Positions 3,053 through 12,700 of a DNA stretch of 29,856 bases are shown here, piece after piece (position 1 is the first letter of the stretch; the number at the start of each line of letters is the position of its first letter). The translations under genes and the position numbers were made by a program. Location of the stretch: assembly GCA_054661495.1 (NCBI GenBank), contig BAAFSQ010000111.1, positions 1 through 29,856 of the forward strand, in the 5' to 3' direction. Source of the DNA: Zygophlyctis sp. KS116. Taxonomy: Eukaryota; Fungi; Chytridiomycota. The notes below the pieces were generated by a model. It had not been told where the DNA came from, did no database searches, and saw only the letters and a list, made by a program, of their open reading frames with translations.

Positions 3053-3489
3053 CTATTCCCCTCTGTACGCTGCAGAATTATTTTCAGTCTCTTCAATCCT
3101 AATTTCATAGAGTAAATTTGGATGGGGAAGTGATTTAATCAGCTCCTTCCAAATATAAACTGTGAGATTTTCTACAGTGCTAACAATTTTAAATATAAAA
3201 ATTACCTAGGAATTTTTTTAAAATATTCTACATCTAAATCAAGATTAGCATGATCTAATTTTATAATAACATTTCCTAAAATGTCCTTTAGCAGTGATAA
3301 ATTCATAATCATTCCAGTTTCTGGATCAATTTCTCCTTTTAGAGTTACAAATGTTTTATAATTATGTCCATGAAAATTCTCATGATTACATTTTCCATAA
3401 ATGGTTTTATTTTCCTCCCGTGTCTTAAATGGGGAGTCTAGTCTATGAGCAGAAGAAAAGTGAACGGTGCGCGTAATGTATCCAATCAT
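3053..3489 (-). CDS. PTS: 6-pyruvoyl tetrahydropterin synthase (eukaryotic type, ~136 aa, 1 intron)
   Basis: FSSAHRL, YGKCNHENFHGHNY, GEIDPETGMIMN, LDHANLDLDV. After intron 3180-3205: STVENLTVYIW...EETENNSAAYRGE*. Confidence 0.93.
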
Positions 3490-5234: not shown

Positions 5235-7118
5235 ATGGTGGAGAAACTCTTGTCTATAATTGACAAGACGATTTCTCTCTTAAACTCAAAAAACTCTCTG
5301 CAAGTGTTGGAATCAGATAAAACATGCAAACATTTACTAAATATCTCTTACAGACTAGAAAACTCCAAAAAATGTAGTCTAATGATTGTTGGAGATTTAA
5401 ATTCTGGAAAATCTACTCTAGTTAATGCTCTATCAAGAGAAAAAATAGTTCCAATGGATCAACAGCCGTGTACTTGTTTATTTATGGAATTATCAGCTTC
5501 ACTTTCCAAGGAAATTCATCTCTTGGATTCTCTATTGAAATATTCTTCAAATGATTCTAGCACTTTTACGAAATTTGAATTGGAAGAATTACAACGGTTG
5601 AATTCTACATTCACTCAAGAATCATTTTTAAAAGTTCTTCATTCAGATTTGAAGGGGATTTTCTTAAAATTACAAGATATTTCAATTATTGATTCTCCGG
5701 GACTAAACATAGATTCGTGGACAACAATGAAATTAGTACAAAAACATCAGGAAATTGATGTATTGGTTTATGTAATTTCTGCAGAAAATCATTTGACACA
5801 GTCTGGAAAGGAATTTTTGGAAATGGCAGTCAAGGAAAAATTACATATATTCATCATTATCAATAGATTTGATCAAATATCTCAAAAGGAAAAGTGTAAA
5901 TCTGAAATTCTTAAACAGATTCAAGAAGTTTTGCCAAATACTTTCTCAATAGGACAGGAACTGATACATTTTATAAGCGCAAAAGAATTTTTAGATCAAA
6001 ATTCATGTAATTCTAAAGATTCGAGTGATTTAAGCAATTTTAGGAAAATGGAAGAAAGTCTTGTAGATTTTCTGAAAAAAAGAAATCTATCTAAATTATT
6101 ACCTGCAAAAACATTTCTTCAAAATGTCTACAAGGATTCAAAAACTAGGATTAATCAAAAAATTACAAATTTACAAAATCAAAAAGAGGAATTAACAATA
6201 GAAATCAATCAAAATCATCCAACATATATAAAAATGGTTCTATTAAAGTCACAGTTTTTGGATAATGTCGATTCTAAAATTGAAGAAATTGCAAAATCTG
6301 TTCAAATTTATTCAAAAAATTCAATGAATGAACTGTTACAAGATTTCGAATTACTTTTTGAATCTGTAGAATTTGAAGGGATCGTCTATACTTGGTATTA
6401 TGCAAATAGGTTGTGTAGATTATCCGGACTCTTGTCAAGGAAACGTATCAAACATTGCCTTTTATATGCTAAACAAGAGTCTATCAAATATATTGAACCT
6501 CTGTATTCTTCTGTACAGATAATAATCCCAGATATAACAATTGATATGGATCTGGTGGTGATTGATGAAACGCTTACAAATGATGATATAATTATTCCAC
6601 AAATTGATTTAAGCTACTATGATGTACTTGCTTTGGATCGGATGGGATCTATATTTCTTCCTCTAGTTGGTGTCTTCAGTTCTGGCCTTTATACTTTGAA
6701 TCACACCATCAAGAATTCTTTCATTTATCATGGGTCTATAGGAGGCATGAAATCAATAGCAGCTTCTATTTCTATCGCTGGCGCGGGAGTTTTGTTATTT
6801 ATAGCATTTTATGATATAAAGGGAAGGCTGCAAAGGAAGATTAAGGAAAAAATATCGGTAGAGTATGGTCAGTCACGATTTATTGAAGATTCTGCTGAAG
6901 ACGTTGCAATGAAAACTAGAAAAGTCTTACGTTCATCTCTATGGGCACTCCAATCGCAATATACCACATGTTATGCTAAAAACTCGACGCTATTGGAATC
7001 TTTGAAGCATAAACATACTCTGGTTCAAAAAAATTTAGATGTATGCATGGAAATTTTAAATCAAGTAACTGCTTTGGAAAGGAGTCTGGAAGATGTAATT
7101 CTTGATCTTGAATTTTAA
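5235..7118 (+). CDS. FZO1: Mitofusin, dynamin-related transmembrane GTPase (627 aa, intronless)
   Basis: G1 GDLNSGKSTLVNAL, PMDQQPCT, G3 IDSPGLN, QEIDVLVYVISAENHLTQSGKEFL, G4 INRFD. Two hydrophobic segments and a C-terminal heptad region. Confidence 0.92.
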   Translation: MVEKLLSIIDKTISLLNSKNSLQVLESDKTCKHLLNISYRLENSKKCSLMIVGDLNSGKSTLVNALSREKIVPMDQQPCTCLFMELSASLSKEIHLLDSLLKYSSNDSSTFTKFELEELQRLNSTFTQESFLKVLHSDLKGIFLKLQDISIIDSPGLNIDSWTTMKLVQKHQEIDVLVYVISAENHLTQSGKEFLEMAVKEKLHIFIIINRFDQISQKEKCKSEILKQIQEVLPNTFSIGQELIHFISAKEFLDQNSCNSKDSSDLSNFRKMEESLVDFLKKRNLSKLLPAKTFLQNVYKDSKTRINQKITNLQNQKEELTIEINQNHPTYIKMVLLKSQFLDNVDSKIEEIAKSVQIYSKNSMNELLQDFELLFESVEFEGIVYTWYYANRLCRLSGLLSRKRIKHCLLYAKQESIKYIEPLYSSVQIIIPDITIDMDLVVIDETLTNDDIIIPQIDLSYYDVLALDRMGSIFLPLVGVFSSGLYTLNHTIKNSFIYHGSIGGMKSIAASISIAGAGVLLFIAFYDIKGRLQRKIKEKISVEYGQSRFIEDSAEDVAMKTRKVLRSSLWALQSQYTTCYAKNSTLLESLKHKHTLVQKNLDVCMEILNQVTALERSLEDVILDLEF

Positions 7119-7585
7119 ATATTTGTACGTAACAAAAGAATTATTTATTGAAATAAATAGGATTTTGTGCGCTATTACACATTGGGCATTCTTTCTCACT
7201 CAAAACATATTTGTTCCAGTCATCCCTATTTGCAGATCCATTACAACAATCGCAAGAAACACTGTTTGCTGAGATTGGATAGCCTATTATAAACTAAAAT
7301 TTATGATTTTTACCTGTCACAATGCAGGGTGGCTCGATTGTCTTGCAATTGATGCATAAAAGCGAGGCGCTATATACCTTTGAGTTGCATTGCATGCATG
7401 TCCTGAGGTCCACTTCTTGATTCAGTTTTTGATCTAAGGACATTTGCAGCACCCAGTCTCGTACTTCCTGGCGATACTTTTCCTAAATATAAATTATAAG
7501 ATGCGTACTGATATATTTTCTTTGGGAAGCACAACGTCAAAAGGTACATCAGTATTTGCAAAATCCGAATTTTCCAAAATCCCTA
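6987..7585. repeat. Direct repeat copy 1 (599 bp): real FZO1 3' end plus duplicated IFT172 3' end
   Basis: Matches 9171-9769 at offset 2184, with one mismatch found by eye (C7566 vs T9750). Confidence 0.97.
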
Positions 7586-7637
7586 TGGAAAATCCCTTTG
7601 TTAACTCTGGATTTCGTAAAAGATTAATCTTATTCAT
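7141..7637 (-). CDS. Putative chimeric ORF (146 aa): insert-derived N-terminus fused in frame to the duplicated IFT172 C-terminal Cys-rich domain (may be a non-expressed fragment)
   Basis: ATG at 7637 in AAAAAAATG context reads [33 protein letters not shown]. Exons 7637-7509, 7482-7314 and 7283-7141 total 441 nt with no internal stop. Confidence 0.4.
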
Positions 7638-9170
7638 TTTTTATACTAATTAACTGCATATCATTCACAGCTCCGCATTAGGACTTGCACAGTTTCCTTG
7701 ATGTCAGAAGTATATTTCTCCAAGTCATTAATAAAGTTAATTAGGCTAGAATTACGTGAAATTAGCTGATCAACATCTTGCTTCACAATGCTAATATTTT
7801 CCAGGAGATTCCAGTCATTCAAGGACTGTTTTAAAATCTGAAGCTTTTCATTTTGGGACAATTGAATGGTTTGTGCCATCAACCCTGTATAATTAAATTC
7901 ACCATTTCCTGCATAAAACCTTTGCAAAATGTCTGATTTTACATATGAATTCTGACTCTGAATCCGAAAATCAATTATCATTGGTTTATCACCCACTTGA
8001 CCACAATTATCCGGATTAGATGTAGAGTCTTGAATGCATAAAATTCTAGAGATCAAATCCAGCTGGACAAGTCCTGTAAGATTATATGTATCCAGATCCA
8101 GCTTGGACAGTAATGTAATAGGACACTCGGTAGATGCAAAATACACAGACATTTTAGAACCAGGAAATGGGATCATAATATGTACTTCCGGGCCAAGTCC
8201 AATAGAATACAGCAACTTGTACACAAATATTTCTTTCAAGTCTGGAGGAAATAAACTCTTGATATTCGTTTCTGTAGGACCATTTTGGTGCGTCTTTATG
8301 TAATATCGAGTCTTTTCATATCCGTTGAATACTGTACAGATAAATCCAGTCTGAACACCGTTATTCTTTGGAGAAAATGAAATATGAAACGTTGAATAAT
8401 CATACTGATTACTGCAGTGCCGGGATAAAAAGTACATTTGTGTCACATACTTAATGACGGTAGCATTCCCATCCAGCCATGCAGCTATTTTTTCGAGTAG
8501 AGTTTCAAAAATCCTGAAGCGCTCTTCAGAATTTCGAATATACCCACTTTTTCTCAGATCATGAACTATTTCTAAAGCCTCATGTGCCAATTCTTCACGC
8601 TCTATACCTTTCTTTTTGTGAATATTATTTCCAATTTCCTGAAACTTGTCCCATTTCTTCTCAAGCTCTTTCGGATCAATATATACAAAGCCGGTACCAG
8701 AAGAAGCAACCCAATTTTCGTCATTGTTAAGTCGAAGATTCCTGAATGGACCAGGAATACCGCTCTGAAACTCTGTACTAAAATGTAGTGGAACAGCAAC
8801 AATCAGAGCATCTTTTAATGACATTCCAAGATCCTTCACAGGAGAATCCTCTACTAATGGATATTCCTATGATAAGATTCTAATAAATTACCTTGTGCTC
8901 TTCTAAATTTCTCTTGTCAAATGATTGCTTGTTCTTAAAGACCAAGAGATCACCAGCATCAATAGAAGAGAGTTTATTACTACACTCGGCTTTTACAGCT
9001 TTTCTAAACTGAGCAATAATAGCAGATGGAGGTAGAGTCACATAATCAGCGGTTGTTCCCATGTATGGAAGACCATTAGCAGAGTCATAGAGATGAAACC
9101 AAATCATAACATCAGAATTTGACATTTTAATTTCGCAACAAGCGCCTCACCTAGAATCTACAGCGCAGGA
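7586..9170 (-). mobile_element. 1585-bp inserted segment carrying one Crinkler-like gene, bounded by a 599-bp host duplication; no transposase or TIRs seen
   Basis: Unique sequence between two near-identical host repeats. Removing the insert plus one repeat restores a simple convergent FZO1/IFT172 locus. Confidence 0.75.
7661..9125 (-). CDS. Crinkler (CRN)-like effector: Ubl-type header domain plus atypical PI3K/HipA-like kinase domain (~479 aa, 1 intron)
   Basis: Exon 1 (9125-8892) IWFHLYDS..G.PY.GTTADYV...QFRKAVKAE.SNKLSSIDAGDLLVFKNK. A 25-nt intron (8867-8891) precedes EYPLVEDSPVKDLGMSLKDALIVAVP, the header end. Kinase-like motifs YYIKTH, KEIFVYKLLYSIGLGP, DLISRILCIQDSTSNPDN, MIIDF. Confidence 0.8.
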
Positions 9171-9302
9171 ACGCTATTGGAATCTTTGAAGCATAAACAT
9201 ACTCTGGTTCAAAAAAATTTAGATGTATGCATGGAAATTTTAAATCAAGTAACTGCTTTGGAAAGGAGTCTGGAAGATGTAATTCTTGATCTTGAATTTT
9301 AA
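9171..9302 (+). pseudogene. Orphan duplicated fragment of the last 43 codons of FZO1 plus stop
   Basis: TLLESLKHKH...VILDLEF* is identical to 6987-7118. No in-frame ATG occurs in the adjoining insert before an upstream stop. Confidence 0.85.
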
Positions 9303-9769
9303 ATATTTGTACGTAACAAAAGAATTATTTATTGAAATAAATAGGATTTTGTGCGCTATTACACATTGGGCATTCTTTCTCACTCAAAACATATTTGTTC
9401 CAGTCATCCCTATTTGCAGATCCATTACAACAATCGCAAGAAACACTGTTTGCTGAGATTGGATAGCCTATTATAAACTAAAATTTATGATTTTTACCTG
9501 TCACAATGCAGGGTGGCTCGATTGTCTTGCAATTGATGCATAAAAGCGAGGCGCTATATACCTTTGAGTTGCATTGCATGCATGTCCTGAGGTCCACTTC
9601 TTGATTCAGTTTTTGATCTAAGGACATTTGCAGCACCCAGTCTCGTACTTCCTGGCGATACTTTTCCTAAATATAAATTATAAGATGCGTACTGATATAT
9701 TTTCTTTGGGAAGCACAACGTCAAAAGGTACATCAGTATTTGCAAAATCTGAATTTTCCAAAATCCCTA
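9171..9769. repeat. Direct repeat copy 2 (599 bp): duplicated FZO1 3' fragment plus real IFT172 3' end
   Basis: Matches 6987-7585. Confidence 0.97.
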
Positions 9770-12700
9770 GGGAACCATCTTCAATTGCATCAACCAAATC
9801 AAGAAAGCGATTCCAACAAACAAAAGCCATATTTAGCATTCCCGCATTCTATTGAATTTAAGACTATTGAAATACCTTGGCTGCCTGGCCTGCCTCAAAA
9901 AATGCAATATCAGGCCGAATTTCATTGGTATATCTCAGAAGAGAAATAGATTGTTTTGCAACCAACAAAGCCAGCTCAGATTTCCCTTTCAGTTTTTCTT
10001 TCAGACACTTCAGATGGGAAATATACAAATATTTCTCCAATTTAGTTTGGATTGTCCCATTACCTGATATTCTCTTTGAATTTAAAATAAAAAAGTTTAC
10101 AAGTTTGAGTAACATCTCTTTTAAAGATATCATTGAATCATTAGATGGGCTGTTTTGAAGAATCGATCTAGCCAAAGTATCATAAAATTCAAAATTGCTA
10201 GATATATTGGGAGTGCCATGTTTGGCAAATTGCCTAACTGCAGTTTCTGGACGCCCTTCTTTATGTAGCTGCTTTGCAAGCAAAGTAAGGTAATTTCCTA
10301 GTGAGTCTAGTTTCTAGCTATTTATAAAAAAAATGTACCTGAGAAGAAGCAATCTCTACACACGTTGCCCAATCACCTCTTTGAGCGAATTCTTCAACGT
10401 TGGCTATGACTTCAGAGGCTGGTCCTTTTTTTTCTGGAGAATCAAAAGTATGCTGCTTCTTGTATATTGTGTCAAAATACTCCGCATATTTTGGAGCTTT
10501 TTGTAGAACATCTTTTGCTTTATCCCATAATTTTCCTTCAATATATGCATCTATAGCATCTTTGTACATTTCAACTGCAAAAAATAGATCTCCCGCCAAT
10601 TGATATTTTCGAATTTCAATCAATTTTTCACATGTTATTCTGGCTACCTCTGCAATCCTCTCCGGAAGGAACTTAACCGCAAGTTTGAATGCATACTCCC
10701 AATTTTCGGCCAAGAAATTCAGATCATTTGTATGACTAGTATTCAGCCGAAGATACATATCTATAGAGAATGAATAATCTTTTTGCTGTTCATAAGATTT
10801 GGCGTTTGCGATAATTTCATCTTTTCCAGAACCAAAAGACGATGAAAGATGCTTTTGATATTCTTGATTAATTTCTCCTAATTTGGTCGGAACATATTCT
10901 TTGGTAAATCTAAGAGCTTCTTTCCAAAGACTTGCTTCTTTATAAAACTTTATGGCGAGTTCCGGTCTTTGAGCCCGTAAGATTAGACCTTCTCCTTTGG
11001 AATAATCCTTCTTATCAAATGCAACTTTTGCCTGGCCCACAAGTACTTCATTCATACTTTGAGGATCATATTTCTCCGCGATTTCTAGTGCGGAAACCCA
11101 GTCTTCATTATGAACATACATGAGAATAGCTTCACGCGGTTTACCCGACGCAATAAATGCAGCCTCTGCATCTTTATATCGCCCCTCATCCTCTAAATGC
11201 ATGGCTAAGGAGTCATATTTAATGAGAATTACCGTATTTATAATTGATTTCAGCAAATTTATATTTGTCAGCATATTTGCTCAGCTCAAATGCAAAGTCA
11301 AATGCATTATTCTCGGCTGCAAATTCCAATGCGGCATCCAAAAGTCCAAATTTAGTTAAAAGTTTTACCGCAGACTCACCTCCGAGTGATCTTGCCCATA
11401 AGTAGGCAACTTGTTTTGATGCGTTTGGACCTCCATGATTTTTTGCAATCTGTAAGTTGAAATGCTTCGATATATTACCCTGTAGGCATCCTCAAACATA
11501 TTGCTGGCACAATACATATTAATCGCAGCCTTAAAATCCAGACCTTCTAGATAATGATGTTCTGCTAATCTGAAGCTTCCCTCCGTTTCCAAACTCTTTC
11601 CGAGATACAGATGTGTATCGGCTAAATATTACAAATTTTTAACCCACCAAGAAGATCCTTATGATATACACTGACTAGTTTTATCATTTGATCATATTGT
11701 CGATTGTTTTTATACATAGCTATAGCCAAATCATGCTCCTTTATAGTTAAATAAAGCTTTTCGGCATCTTTTAGTTGTCCCATAGCTTCAAACTCCTTAG
11801 CTTGCTTAATATAAGTCTCTGAGACCTCTTTTGGGCTCATAAATGTGCATGCGACTTTATGAGCACGCTCCCATTGATGCACTTTTGAGTACATTACTAC
11901 CGCTTCATTTGGTTTTTTAGCCTCAATATAGAATTTTTCAGCCATGGAGTAATCTTCGACATCTCTAAAGTGATCAGCCAACGGAACAAAATATTTTTTG
12001 ATTAAATCATAATTTTGGACTGACTCGATTATAGAGACTGCCTTCTTCCACTAAAGATTAAATATAAATTTAAAAACTAACCTGTTTAGATCCAATAGCA
12101 GCCTCAATCGCTTTAATCATATTCCCTGACTCAATAAAATGATTAATTGAAGAATCTAACTGCCTGTTGGAGGCAAGGTAATCTCCCCATTGTTCCTCTA
12201 ATTTGATGACTTCCTCCGGGTAAGAAACGCGAGCTAATTCAACAGCAGAACTGTATACATTTCCTTTTTTAAAGGCATCCATGGCTTTATCAACTAATTT
12301 AACCCGCTGGAACAATTCTCCGGCCTTTTCATATTGACCACTAGCATACAAAGAAGTAGCGATTCGTTCAGTTAGATCCAAATTGTGATCCAATCCACGA
12401 TGAGCTAATAAATTGGCTGCTTTTAAAGGGGCACCTAGTGCATTAATGGTTTAAATTCGCTACCTCCTTTTAAATAGAGAGAAATAGCTGTTGAAAAATC
12501 ACCCTCCTCTGATTTAAAGTCCCCTAATAATCAGTACCAGTTGTGCAAAAATACCAGCCTTTCCTTCTTGTCCTGAATCAATAAGCCATTGCAAATAATT
12601 TCGCTTTAATGTCTCCAGCTCAGGGTGATTTTTAACTTCTGCAATTTTGATGGATTTGTCCCATTTATGAAGCTCTTGGTACATGTCCATCGCCTCTTCA

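Follow-up and report, generated by a model that had tools for sequence, protein, structure and literature searches.

A Crinkler-like gene between 599-bp direct duplications of two convergent host gene ends in the chytrid Zygophlyctis sp. KS116

Results

Organization of the locus

In the stretch of DNA analyzed here (hereafter the window; 29,856 nucleotides, positions 1 to 29,856 of contig BAAFSQ010000111.1, assembly GCA_054661495.1, of the chytrid fungus Zygophlyctis sp. KS116), a single gene with a Crinkler (CRN)-like N-terminal module lies between two direct copies of a host segment that spans the 3' ends of two convergent genes, a mitofusin gene (FZO1) and the gene for intraflagellar transport protein 172 (IFT172). 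We refer to the 599-bp repeat as R (copies R1 and R2), to the 1585-bp insert between the copies as X, and to the mitofusin-side and IFT172-side flanks as A and B, respectively. In a base-by-base comparison, shifting positions 6987-7585 by 2184 brought them into register with 9171-9769, in direct orientation and with a sole mismatch (7566 C vs. 9750 T); their homology starts abruptly at 6986/6987 and ends at 7585/7586, plus four matching bases at 7587-7590. R is present at these two sites only in the organism's own assembly (12.7 Mb, 1175 contigs), against which all genome searches were run. In a diverged strain (metagenome contig L013, described below) R1 extends to 7590, and the length of the duplication is thus 599-604 bp. 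The features of the locus, with the evidence for each, are as follows.

5235-7118, plus strand: complete mitofusin gene (FZO1); open reading frame (ORF), Dynamin_N domain, named relatives.
6987-7585, no strand: repeat copy R1, 599 bp; self-comparison, genome search, L013.
7141-7585, minus strand: duplicated, 5'-truncated 3'-end fragment of IFT172 in R1, a Cys-rich tail with introns; translation the same as that of the R2 tail.
7586-9170, minus strand: insert X, 1585 bp, holding one gene that leaves 75 nt on its 3' side and 45 nt on its 5' side; apart from the header module, no other copy in the genome.
7661-8866, minus strand: exon 2, predicted end of the Crinkler N-terminal module (...ALIVAVPL) followed by an atypical kinase-like domain, stop codon at 7661-7663; ORF, homologs, structure model.
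8867-8891, minus strand: intron of 25 nt (GT..AG) at the same position as in paralogs; read from the sequence, exons in frame.
8892-9125, minus strand: exon 1, Crinkler-like, ubiquitin-like header; paralogs, Pfam, feature search.
9171-9769, no strand: repeat copy R2, 599 bp; self-comparison, genome search, L013.
9171-9302, plus strand: duplicated, 5'-truncated 3'-end fragment of mitofusin in R2; self-comparison.
9325-11274, minus strand: functional IFT172 gene, 3' portion, with the tail provided by R2 and the gene running on past 11274; Pfam, named relatives, tail translation.

The mitofusin ORF encodes 627 aa (Pfam Dynamin_N, E 2.7e-18) and has chytrid mitofusins as its best named relatives, while the minus-strand exons to the right of R2 match TPR_IF140-IFT172 and related Pfam families as well as proteins annotated at source as intraflagellar transport protein 172. 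The two genes converge with a 22-nt gap between their stop codons, and R covers both 3' ends, including two small IFT172 introns. The final 44 codons of mitofusin fall within R1 (stop codon at 7116-7118); the IFT172 stop codon is found at 7141-7143 in R1 and at 9325-9327 in R2, and the IFT172 tail translates identically in the two copies. That is, the mitofusin 3' end is completed in R1 and the IFT172 3' end in R2. A first-pass annotation of this DNA, based on the sequence alone, had described 599-bp direct repeats with one mismatch that include introns and the 22-nt gap, and had named the two convergent genes as FZO1 and IFT172, completed by copy 1 and copy 2, respectively; our base-by-base comparison agrees with the former, and the Pfam matches, named relatives and stop positions agree with the latter. 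The repeat-insert-repeat layout of the reference sequence is confirmed. We also observed an ATG at about 7637 on the minus strand, 24 nt beyond the Crinkler stop codon, which appears to open a frame into the duplicated Cys-rich IFT172 tail in R1 (7141-7637).

The inserted gene

The X gene, whose two exons were searched separately, is read from the minus strand as exon 1 (9125-8892) and exon 2 (8866-7664), which join in frame into a predicted 479-aa product. The header module (8789-9128) takes in exon 1 and the intron and extends 26 codons into exon 2; it has at least 46 paralogs in the genome at the DNA level and at least 55 at the protein level, with nucleotide identities of 67-85%, and the homology to these paralogs stops at 8789, directly after the motif ALIVAVPL. 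Oomycete Crinklers switch C-terminal domains at the HVLVxxP junction, and at the sequence level ALIVAVPL appears to resemble such a junction. A shared N-terminal module followed by variable C-terminal domains, a feature of the family, is present here as well (e.g., a paralog on contig C86 has the same motif and then a P-loop NTPase). The Pfam Crinkler family (PF20147) matched the X header below its cut-off (E 0.083; 14.1 vs. 24.6 bits), one paralog reaching E 0.013, and 29 of the 30 nearest named clusters in an Atlas language-model feature search with the header were PF20147, at 0.93. The sub-threshold Pfam match and the feature search both agree with the earlier description of the 1585 bp as holding a single CRN-like gene.

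The C-terminal part of exon 2 gave no Pfam match and no PDB sequence match. Its homologs, about 80 in number and mostly stand-alone proteins of ~338 aa at ~50% identity, come from chytrids (Globomyces, Homolaphlyctis, Batrachochytrium, Obelidium, Coelomomyces) and one aphelid; within the genome only one distant paralog was found (contig C63, 41-49% identical). With an AlphaFold (AF2) model of the domain (pLDDT, the predicted local distance difference test, of 84), Foldseek returned VPS34 (E 3e-5, probability 1.0, template modeling (TM) score only 0.34), and VIA-align returned actin-fragmin kinase (1cja, Z 10.5), PI4KII-alpha (4yc4, Z 10.1), CtkA (3akk, Z 9.9) and 3hzi (Z 9.7), the last of which we take to be HipA. 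The domain is thus modeled as an atypical kinase-like bilobal fold, similar to actin-fragmin kinase, PI3/4K, HipA and CtkA. Across 33 homologs, no variation was seen at K182, E203 and D290-F291 and almost none at D271, N275 and N278; the invariant Lys, Glu and Asp sit at the places expected of the kinase motifs, an assignment made by position in the model and not by structural superposition. Between the reference and L013, the kinase-like exon shows 4% synonymous and 1.2% non-synonymous divergence, and since the resulting ratio (pN/pS) is 0.29, the comparison indicates that the X gene is under purifying selection between strains. One homolog of the kinase-like domain (P0017, 50% identical) is filed under a 'Proteobacteria bacterium' metagenome-assembled genome; it is probably a chytrid binning contaminant, or else a cross-domain occurrence.

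No second copy of X exists in the 12.7-Mb assembly: positions 7586-8788 are unique, and the only paralogs are those of the header module (up to 85% identity). Pfam searches of X gave no transposase or reverse transcriptase, the Crinkler-header/kinase-like gene being its sole gene, and searches of X found no terminal inverted repeats, no long terminal repeat (LTR) and no poly(A) tail or A-run at the 3' end. The lack of a transposase, terminal inverted repeats, LTRs and a poly(A) tail agrees with what the first-pass annotation had reported. Its argument from the intron also stands, as the 25-nt intron is kept and retroposition of X is ruled out by this retention together with the missing poly(A) tail. 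A transposable element with a target-site duplication (TSD) was rejected as well: there is no element enzyme, there are no defined ends, X is single-copy, and the duplication is neither short nor of fixed length (599-604 bp here, at least 103 bp at C86). The donor that the annotation had hoped to find by genome search was not recovered, the distant C63 relative of the kinase-like part being the only match to that part. Separately, the genome contains 71 retropepsin (PF13975) matches on many 2-9-kb contigs, many of them inside open frames of 1100-1560 aa, and thus apparently encodes numerous intact LTR-retrotransposon-like polyproteins despite its compactness.

The header family itself showed further features. 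In L013, positions 8934-9044 of the header exon differ from the reference at 33 of 111 nt (30%), compared to ~1.5% in the surroundings, and this patch is closer to the paralogous header on contig C892 (86.5% over 141 nt) than to its own orthologue, which looks like gene conversion between header paralogs. Two Crinkler header exons stand in tandem, ~400 nt apart, on contigs C398 (5448-6189; 89% identical to each other), C892, C887, C15 and C685, and these could serve as alternative first exons or else be duplicates of the header alone. Headers are also often found at contig ends, so the header family breaks the assembly.

Junctions and depth in independent metagenomes

The population evidence, which is contig-level throughout, comes in part from Logan contigs (31-letter words) of four freshwater metagenome runs (X2, X3, X4 and X6), each from a different study, aligned to window positions 5700-11100. 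The R1-X junction (7585/7586) is bridged in all four runs and the X-R2 junction (9170/9171) in X4 (record 21, 9076-9767) and X6 (record 30); the A-R junction (6986/6987) is bridged in X2 and X3, and the R-B junction (9769/9770) in X2, X3 and X4. In addition, L013, a 2517-nt metagenome contig of the Joint Genome Institute (JGI; sample 3300046808) reached via a 97%-identical protein, is colinear with window positions 7499-10015 at 97.2% identity, so that one contig runs from the end of R1 through the complete X and R2 and 246 nt into the IFT172 flank. Hence, the mapping of the two junctions that had been proposed as a check came out positive at the contig level: both novel junctions occur naturally, in several samples and strains, which excludes a chimeric assembly. 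Since X both follows the end of R and precedes its start, these junctions can come from three arrangements only: R is duplicated, the unit forms a tandem array, or it is circular.

The contig leading from R into X was deeper than the contig leading from R into B in all four runs, by 1.4- to 3-fold, as listed here.

X2: depth 126 (R to X) vs. 73 (R to B).
X3: depth 139 (R to X) vs. 99 (R to B).
X4: depth 18 (R to X) vs. 6 (R to B); contigs of X plus R 18-23, flanks 4-6.
X6: depth 4.2 across R to X; bins just beyond R toward B 0.1-1.8.

Mean depths of metagenome contigs are noisy, and this copy-number signal is only suggestive. The excess suggests a tandem array, formed by unequal crossing-over between the R copies, or excised circles, and fits both equally; it is opposite to what a mixture with empty alleles would be expected to give. 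The idea that recombination between the repeats amplifies or excises the R+X unit, as put forward in the first-pass annotation, is therefore plausible.

It is also conceivable that the chromosome is empty (A-R-B) and that R+X exists only as a free circle or in some other context, its loop having been threaded into the chromosome by the assemblers. All the evidence is based on de Bruijn graphs, in which A-R-B together with an R-X loop is identical to A-R-X-R-B, and such a topology artefact would agree with the depth of R+X relative to its flanks as well as with the A+R contig of X2 and X3, which is continuous through 6987 while the X-R2 junction is missing from these runs. The missing link could possibly result from graph simplification beside the header repeats, whose very high summed depth runs into the thousands. 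However, the junctions are seen repeatedly, across six data sets that differ in study and strain, L013 joins X, the whole of R2 and 246 nt of B in one contig, and an acentric circle is unlikely to have been inherited stably in strains that have diverged. Further, the summed depth of the exits from R in X2 (126 toward X, 73 toward B) is roughly fourfold that of the A+R contig (mean 51), and this excess requires inflow from X to R. We therefore consider such an artefact very unlikely. Further searches gave the following results: an exact 34-nt pattern from R had no match in JGI metagenome contigs, a mitofusin-based search for the locus in the same contigs found nothing, the exact mitofusin protein had no record, and the mitofusin and IFT172 neighbor searches reached other species only (up to 54% and 79% identity, respectively), with no same-species contig linking A through R.

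Ancestral state and age of the insertion

In two related species the mitofusin and IFT172 genes are convergent and ~8-35 nt apart, with nothing between them (Logan contig L041, SRR29492106, mitofusin 54% identical; ENA contig L043, ERZ27280207). The empty site that had been proposed as a check was thus found, in related species, and because the sites of L041 and L043 are empty, the empty state is ancestral and X plus the second R derived. A third relative (Logan contig L042, SRR30127100) has a PTPS gene after IFT172 in place of mitofusin, and the synteny seen here is not universal among relatives.

The first-pass annotation had taken the single mismatch between the repeats to mean that the event is very recent, and this part of it did not hold. 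The insertion is common to strains that are 1.4-2% (X4, X6) to 2.8% (L013) diverged, with 4% synonymous divergence in X, which, as judged from these sequences, shows it to predate the divergence of the lake strains. R2 differs by 1.67% between the reference and L013, and because strains carrying the insertion differ to this extent, R1 and R2 would be expected to differ, without homogenization, by at least 1.67% (~10 sites), of which only one is seen. Such near-identity reflects assembler collapse, gene conversion, or both. A de Bruijn assembler writes the interior of a 599-bp repeat once and outputs it twice, leaving only differences near the repeat end phasable; because short-read assembly collapses the interior in this manner, the single mismatch is a lower bound. 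Consistent with this, the mismatches seen between R1 and R2 are 20 nt from the right end in the reference (7566) and 41-46 nt from it in L013 (7545), with no others. At site 7518/9702, which is phasable in both assemblies, both copies have T in the reference and both have G in L013, i.e., the copies co-vary, and at 7121-7122 and 9305-9306 both reference copies have AT instead of the TG found in L013 and in all four metagenome runs, a strain-specific change in both copies. From these patterns we infer gene conversion between the R copies.

Recurrence at other Crinkler loci

We read 20 other loci with Crinkler headers, ~180 kb in total. As had been proposed, they were checked for flanking host duplications: the layout of the window recurs at contig C86, with repeats of 103 nt, and 18 of the 20 loci show no such duplication, although many of them lie at contig ends. 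At C86, a minus-strand Crinkler gene at 462-2517, encoding the header and a P-loop NTPase, sits between direct repeats at 1-103 and 2625-2727 (97% identical) that derive from the 3' end of the neighboring sirtuin gene; the genuine end of that gene is a third copy, at 3056-3149, and all three copies are local, with none elsewhere in the genome. A 330-nt remnant between copies 2 and 3 contains an ORF (…GHGRYDVRIEF…K…) that looks like a fragment of a PD-(D/E)XK nuclease. Copies 1 and 2 both include 26 nt of this older insert, and because the repeat does so, the second event seems to have duplicated a stretch spanning the junction of the first insertion, which suggests serial insertions at one site. 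At contig C426, an EEP gene beside UTP21 is flanked only by a 43-nt repeat of 91% identity.

These loci bear on the possibility that an unrecognized mobile system acts in trans, with a nuclease or nickase encoded elsewhere making widely offset nicks and mobilizing gene cassettes. Crinkler families typically carry nuclease and kinase toxin domains, which speaks for such a system. On the other hand, X has no nuclease, terminal repeats or second copy, the duplicated lengths differ widely, and R in the window and the repeat at C86 share no sequence; we regard a trans-acting system as highly improbable. Pfam HNH (PF01844) had no match in the genome.

They also bear on a Campbell-type origin, one of the two routes considered in the first-pass annotation, in which a circle carrying X and a copy of R integrates by one homologous crossover into a single-copy R, as yeast integrative plasmids do, and can pop out, reintegrate and spread between genomes via host recombination alone. 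The product of such ends-in integration is a direct duplication of the homology around the cargo, which is the layout observed. The greater depth of R+X relative to its flanks (18-23 vs. 4-6 in X4; 1.4- to 2.5-fold in X2 and X3), the larger distance of the unit from the reference in X4 (1.4-2%, vs. 0.3-1.3% for the flanks) and the co-variation of the R copies between strains at 7518/9702 are likewise in line with it. However, how the first circle would have acquired both X and a host segment is left unexplained, no circle was observed in the contig-level data, and a circle of 2.2 kb that has neither a visible origin nor a centromere would be unlikely to last over 4% synonymous divergence. Moreover, the duplication at C86 spans an older insertion junction, which is more in keeping with arbitrary local breaks than with a defined attachment segment. 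A Campbell-type origin thus appears unlikely to us.

Discussion

We lean, with limited confidence, toward the hypothesis that the locus arose by a duplicate-and-insert repair event that started from offset breaks or a template switch; as part of this hypothesis, and held with the same slight preference, X is a chromosomally integrated gene insertion that is neither a transposon nor an assembly chimera. The starting point would have been a convergent mitofusin-IFT172 pair whose stop codons lay 22 nt apart. In one repair event, ~600 bp over both 3' ends would have been duplicated and a 1.6-kb piece with the Crinkler-header/kinase-like gene placed between the copies, either because two opposite-strand breaks ~600 bp apart were filled in and joined to a captured fragment, or because replication switched template to the gene and then returned to the start of R. 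Such an insertion would be tolerated in a near-spacerless genome because the duplication restores a full 3' end to both genes. Later recombination between the copies may keep R1 and R2 alike, and would probably alter the number of R+X units or free circles.

The duplicated stretch is arbitrary local sequence in both cases (two coding 3' ends here; at C86, the 3' end of a sirtuin gene together with 26 nt from an earlier insert), and by analogy duplications that vary in length and content around an enzyme-less, single-copy cargo would fit offset-break repair and not a transposon. That all examples spare their neighbors could be explained if only insertions with such a duplication survive among 22-nt spacers. 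Several observations weigh against the repair hypothesis. The flanking duplications are missing from 18 of the 20 other Crinkler loci, as mentioned above. No read or contig covers A-R1-X-R2-B, and the number of units and the integration on the A side rest on graph-based assemblies; X2 and X3, with their continuous A+R contig, lack the X-R2 junction. Finally, no donor of X was found against which to score junction microhomology; at the left junction there is a 7-nt local repeat, which is a hint only given its background rate of 2.9%, and there is none at the right junction.

A broader proposal is that the 2184-bp R+X unit is one case of a genome-wide, transposase-free mode of gene gain, in which genes, often effector-like ones, arrive with long, gene-sparing duplications and the resulting units can be amplified or excised (as tandem arrays or circles), reintegrated by host recombination and thereby moved between strains; we consider this rather unlikely and offer it as a speculation. 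The locus is of interest nonetheless for what it says about genomes with almost no spacers, where every insertion disrupts some gene: one natural solution would be for the insertion to bring a duplication of sufficient length to rebuild the two neighbors. If the layout were common in this chytrid, it would represent a main entry route for effector-like genes into a compact eukaryotic genome, and a source of repeat-flanked units that amplify or get lost. As regards methodology, near-identical long flanking repeats in a short-read assembly do not date an event.

Comparison with known systems

Campbell-type integration, as in phage lambda and yeast integrative plasmids, also places cargo between direct duplications of a homology and is reversible and amplifiable; here, no circle, attachment site or integrase was seen, and the duplicated segment differs by locus. 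The TSDs of transposons are similar to R in being direct duplications of the target around an insert. Their length is fixed by the enzyme, typically at a few to tens of bp and reportedly at ~126 bp in the R9 elements of rotifers, to our knowledge the longest target duplication of any transposon. The exceptionally long TSD of R9 is the subject of Gladyshev and Arkhipova 2009, listed in PMC6895275. The duplication here is 599 bp and locus-variable, with no element enzyme, no defined ends and a single copy of the insert.

Kinase domains are known CRN cargo, and the X gene resembles the CRN families in what appears from its sequence to be a header shared by at least 55 paralogs, an HVLVxxP-like end (ALIVAVP) and unrelated C-terminal domains thereafter. 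Crinkler effector families are described for oomycetes, Batrachochytrium and Rhizophagus (PMC3161006, PMC5364385, PMC6131194). The X gene differs in that its header scores under the Pfam cut-off, its host is a freshwater chytrid, and its C-terminal domain is otherwise a stand-alone protein of ~338 aa in chytrids and aphelids; its role as an effector is putative.

The closest parallels for the duplication itself come from the repair of offset breaks. At inversion breakpoints in Drosophila, according to the passage of PMC7487137 that cites Ranz et al. 2007, breaks are offset, the overhangs are filled in and the intervening stretch is duplicated, such that the genes at the breakpoint keep an intact copy and longer duplications survive selection better. 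The likeness lies in a fill-in duplication that spares genes; the Drosophila duplicates, as presented in that passage, are inverted and flank an inversion, whereas those reported here are direct and flank an inserted gene foreign to the site, with no inversion. Paired, offset nicks on opposite strands lead to fill-in tandem duplications as well, often with inserted DNA or templated insertions (PMC11081867). In those experiments the offsets are up to ~100 bp and the inserts short, whereas at the locus described here the offset would be ~600 bp, and a whole gene is fixed in natural populations.

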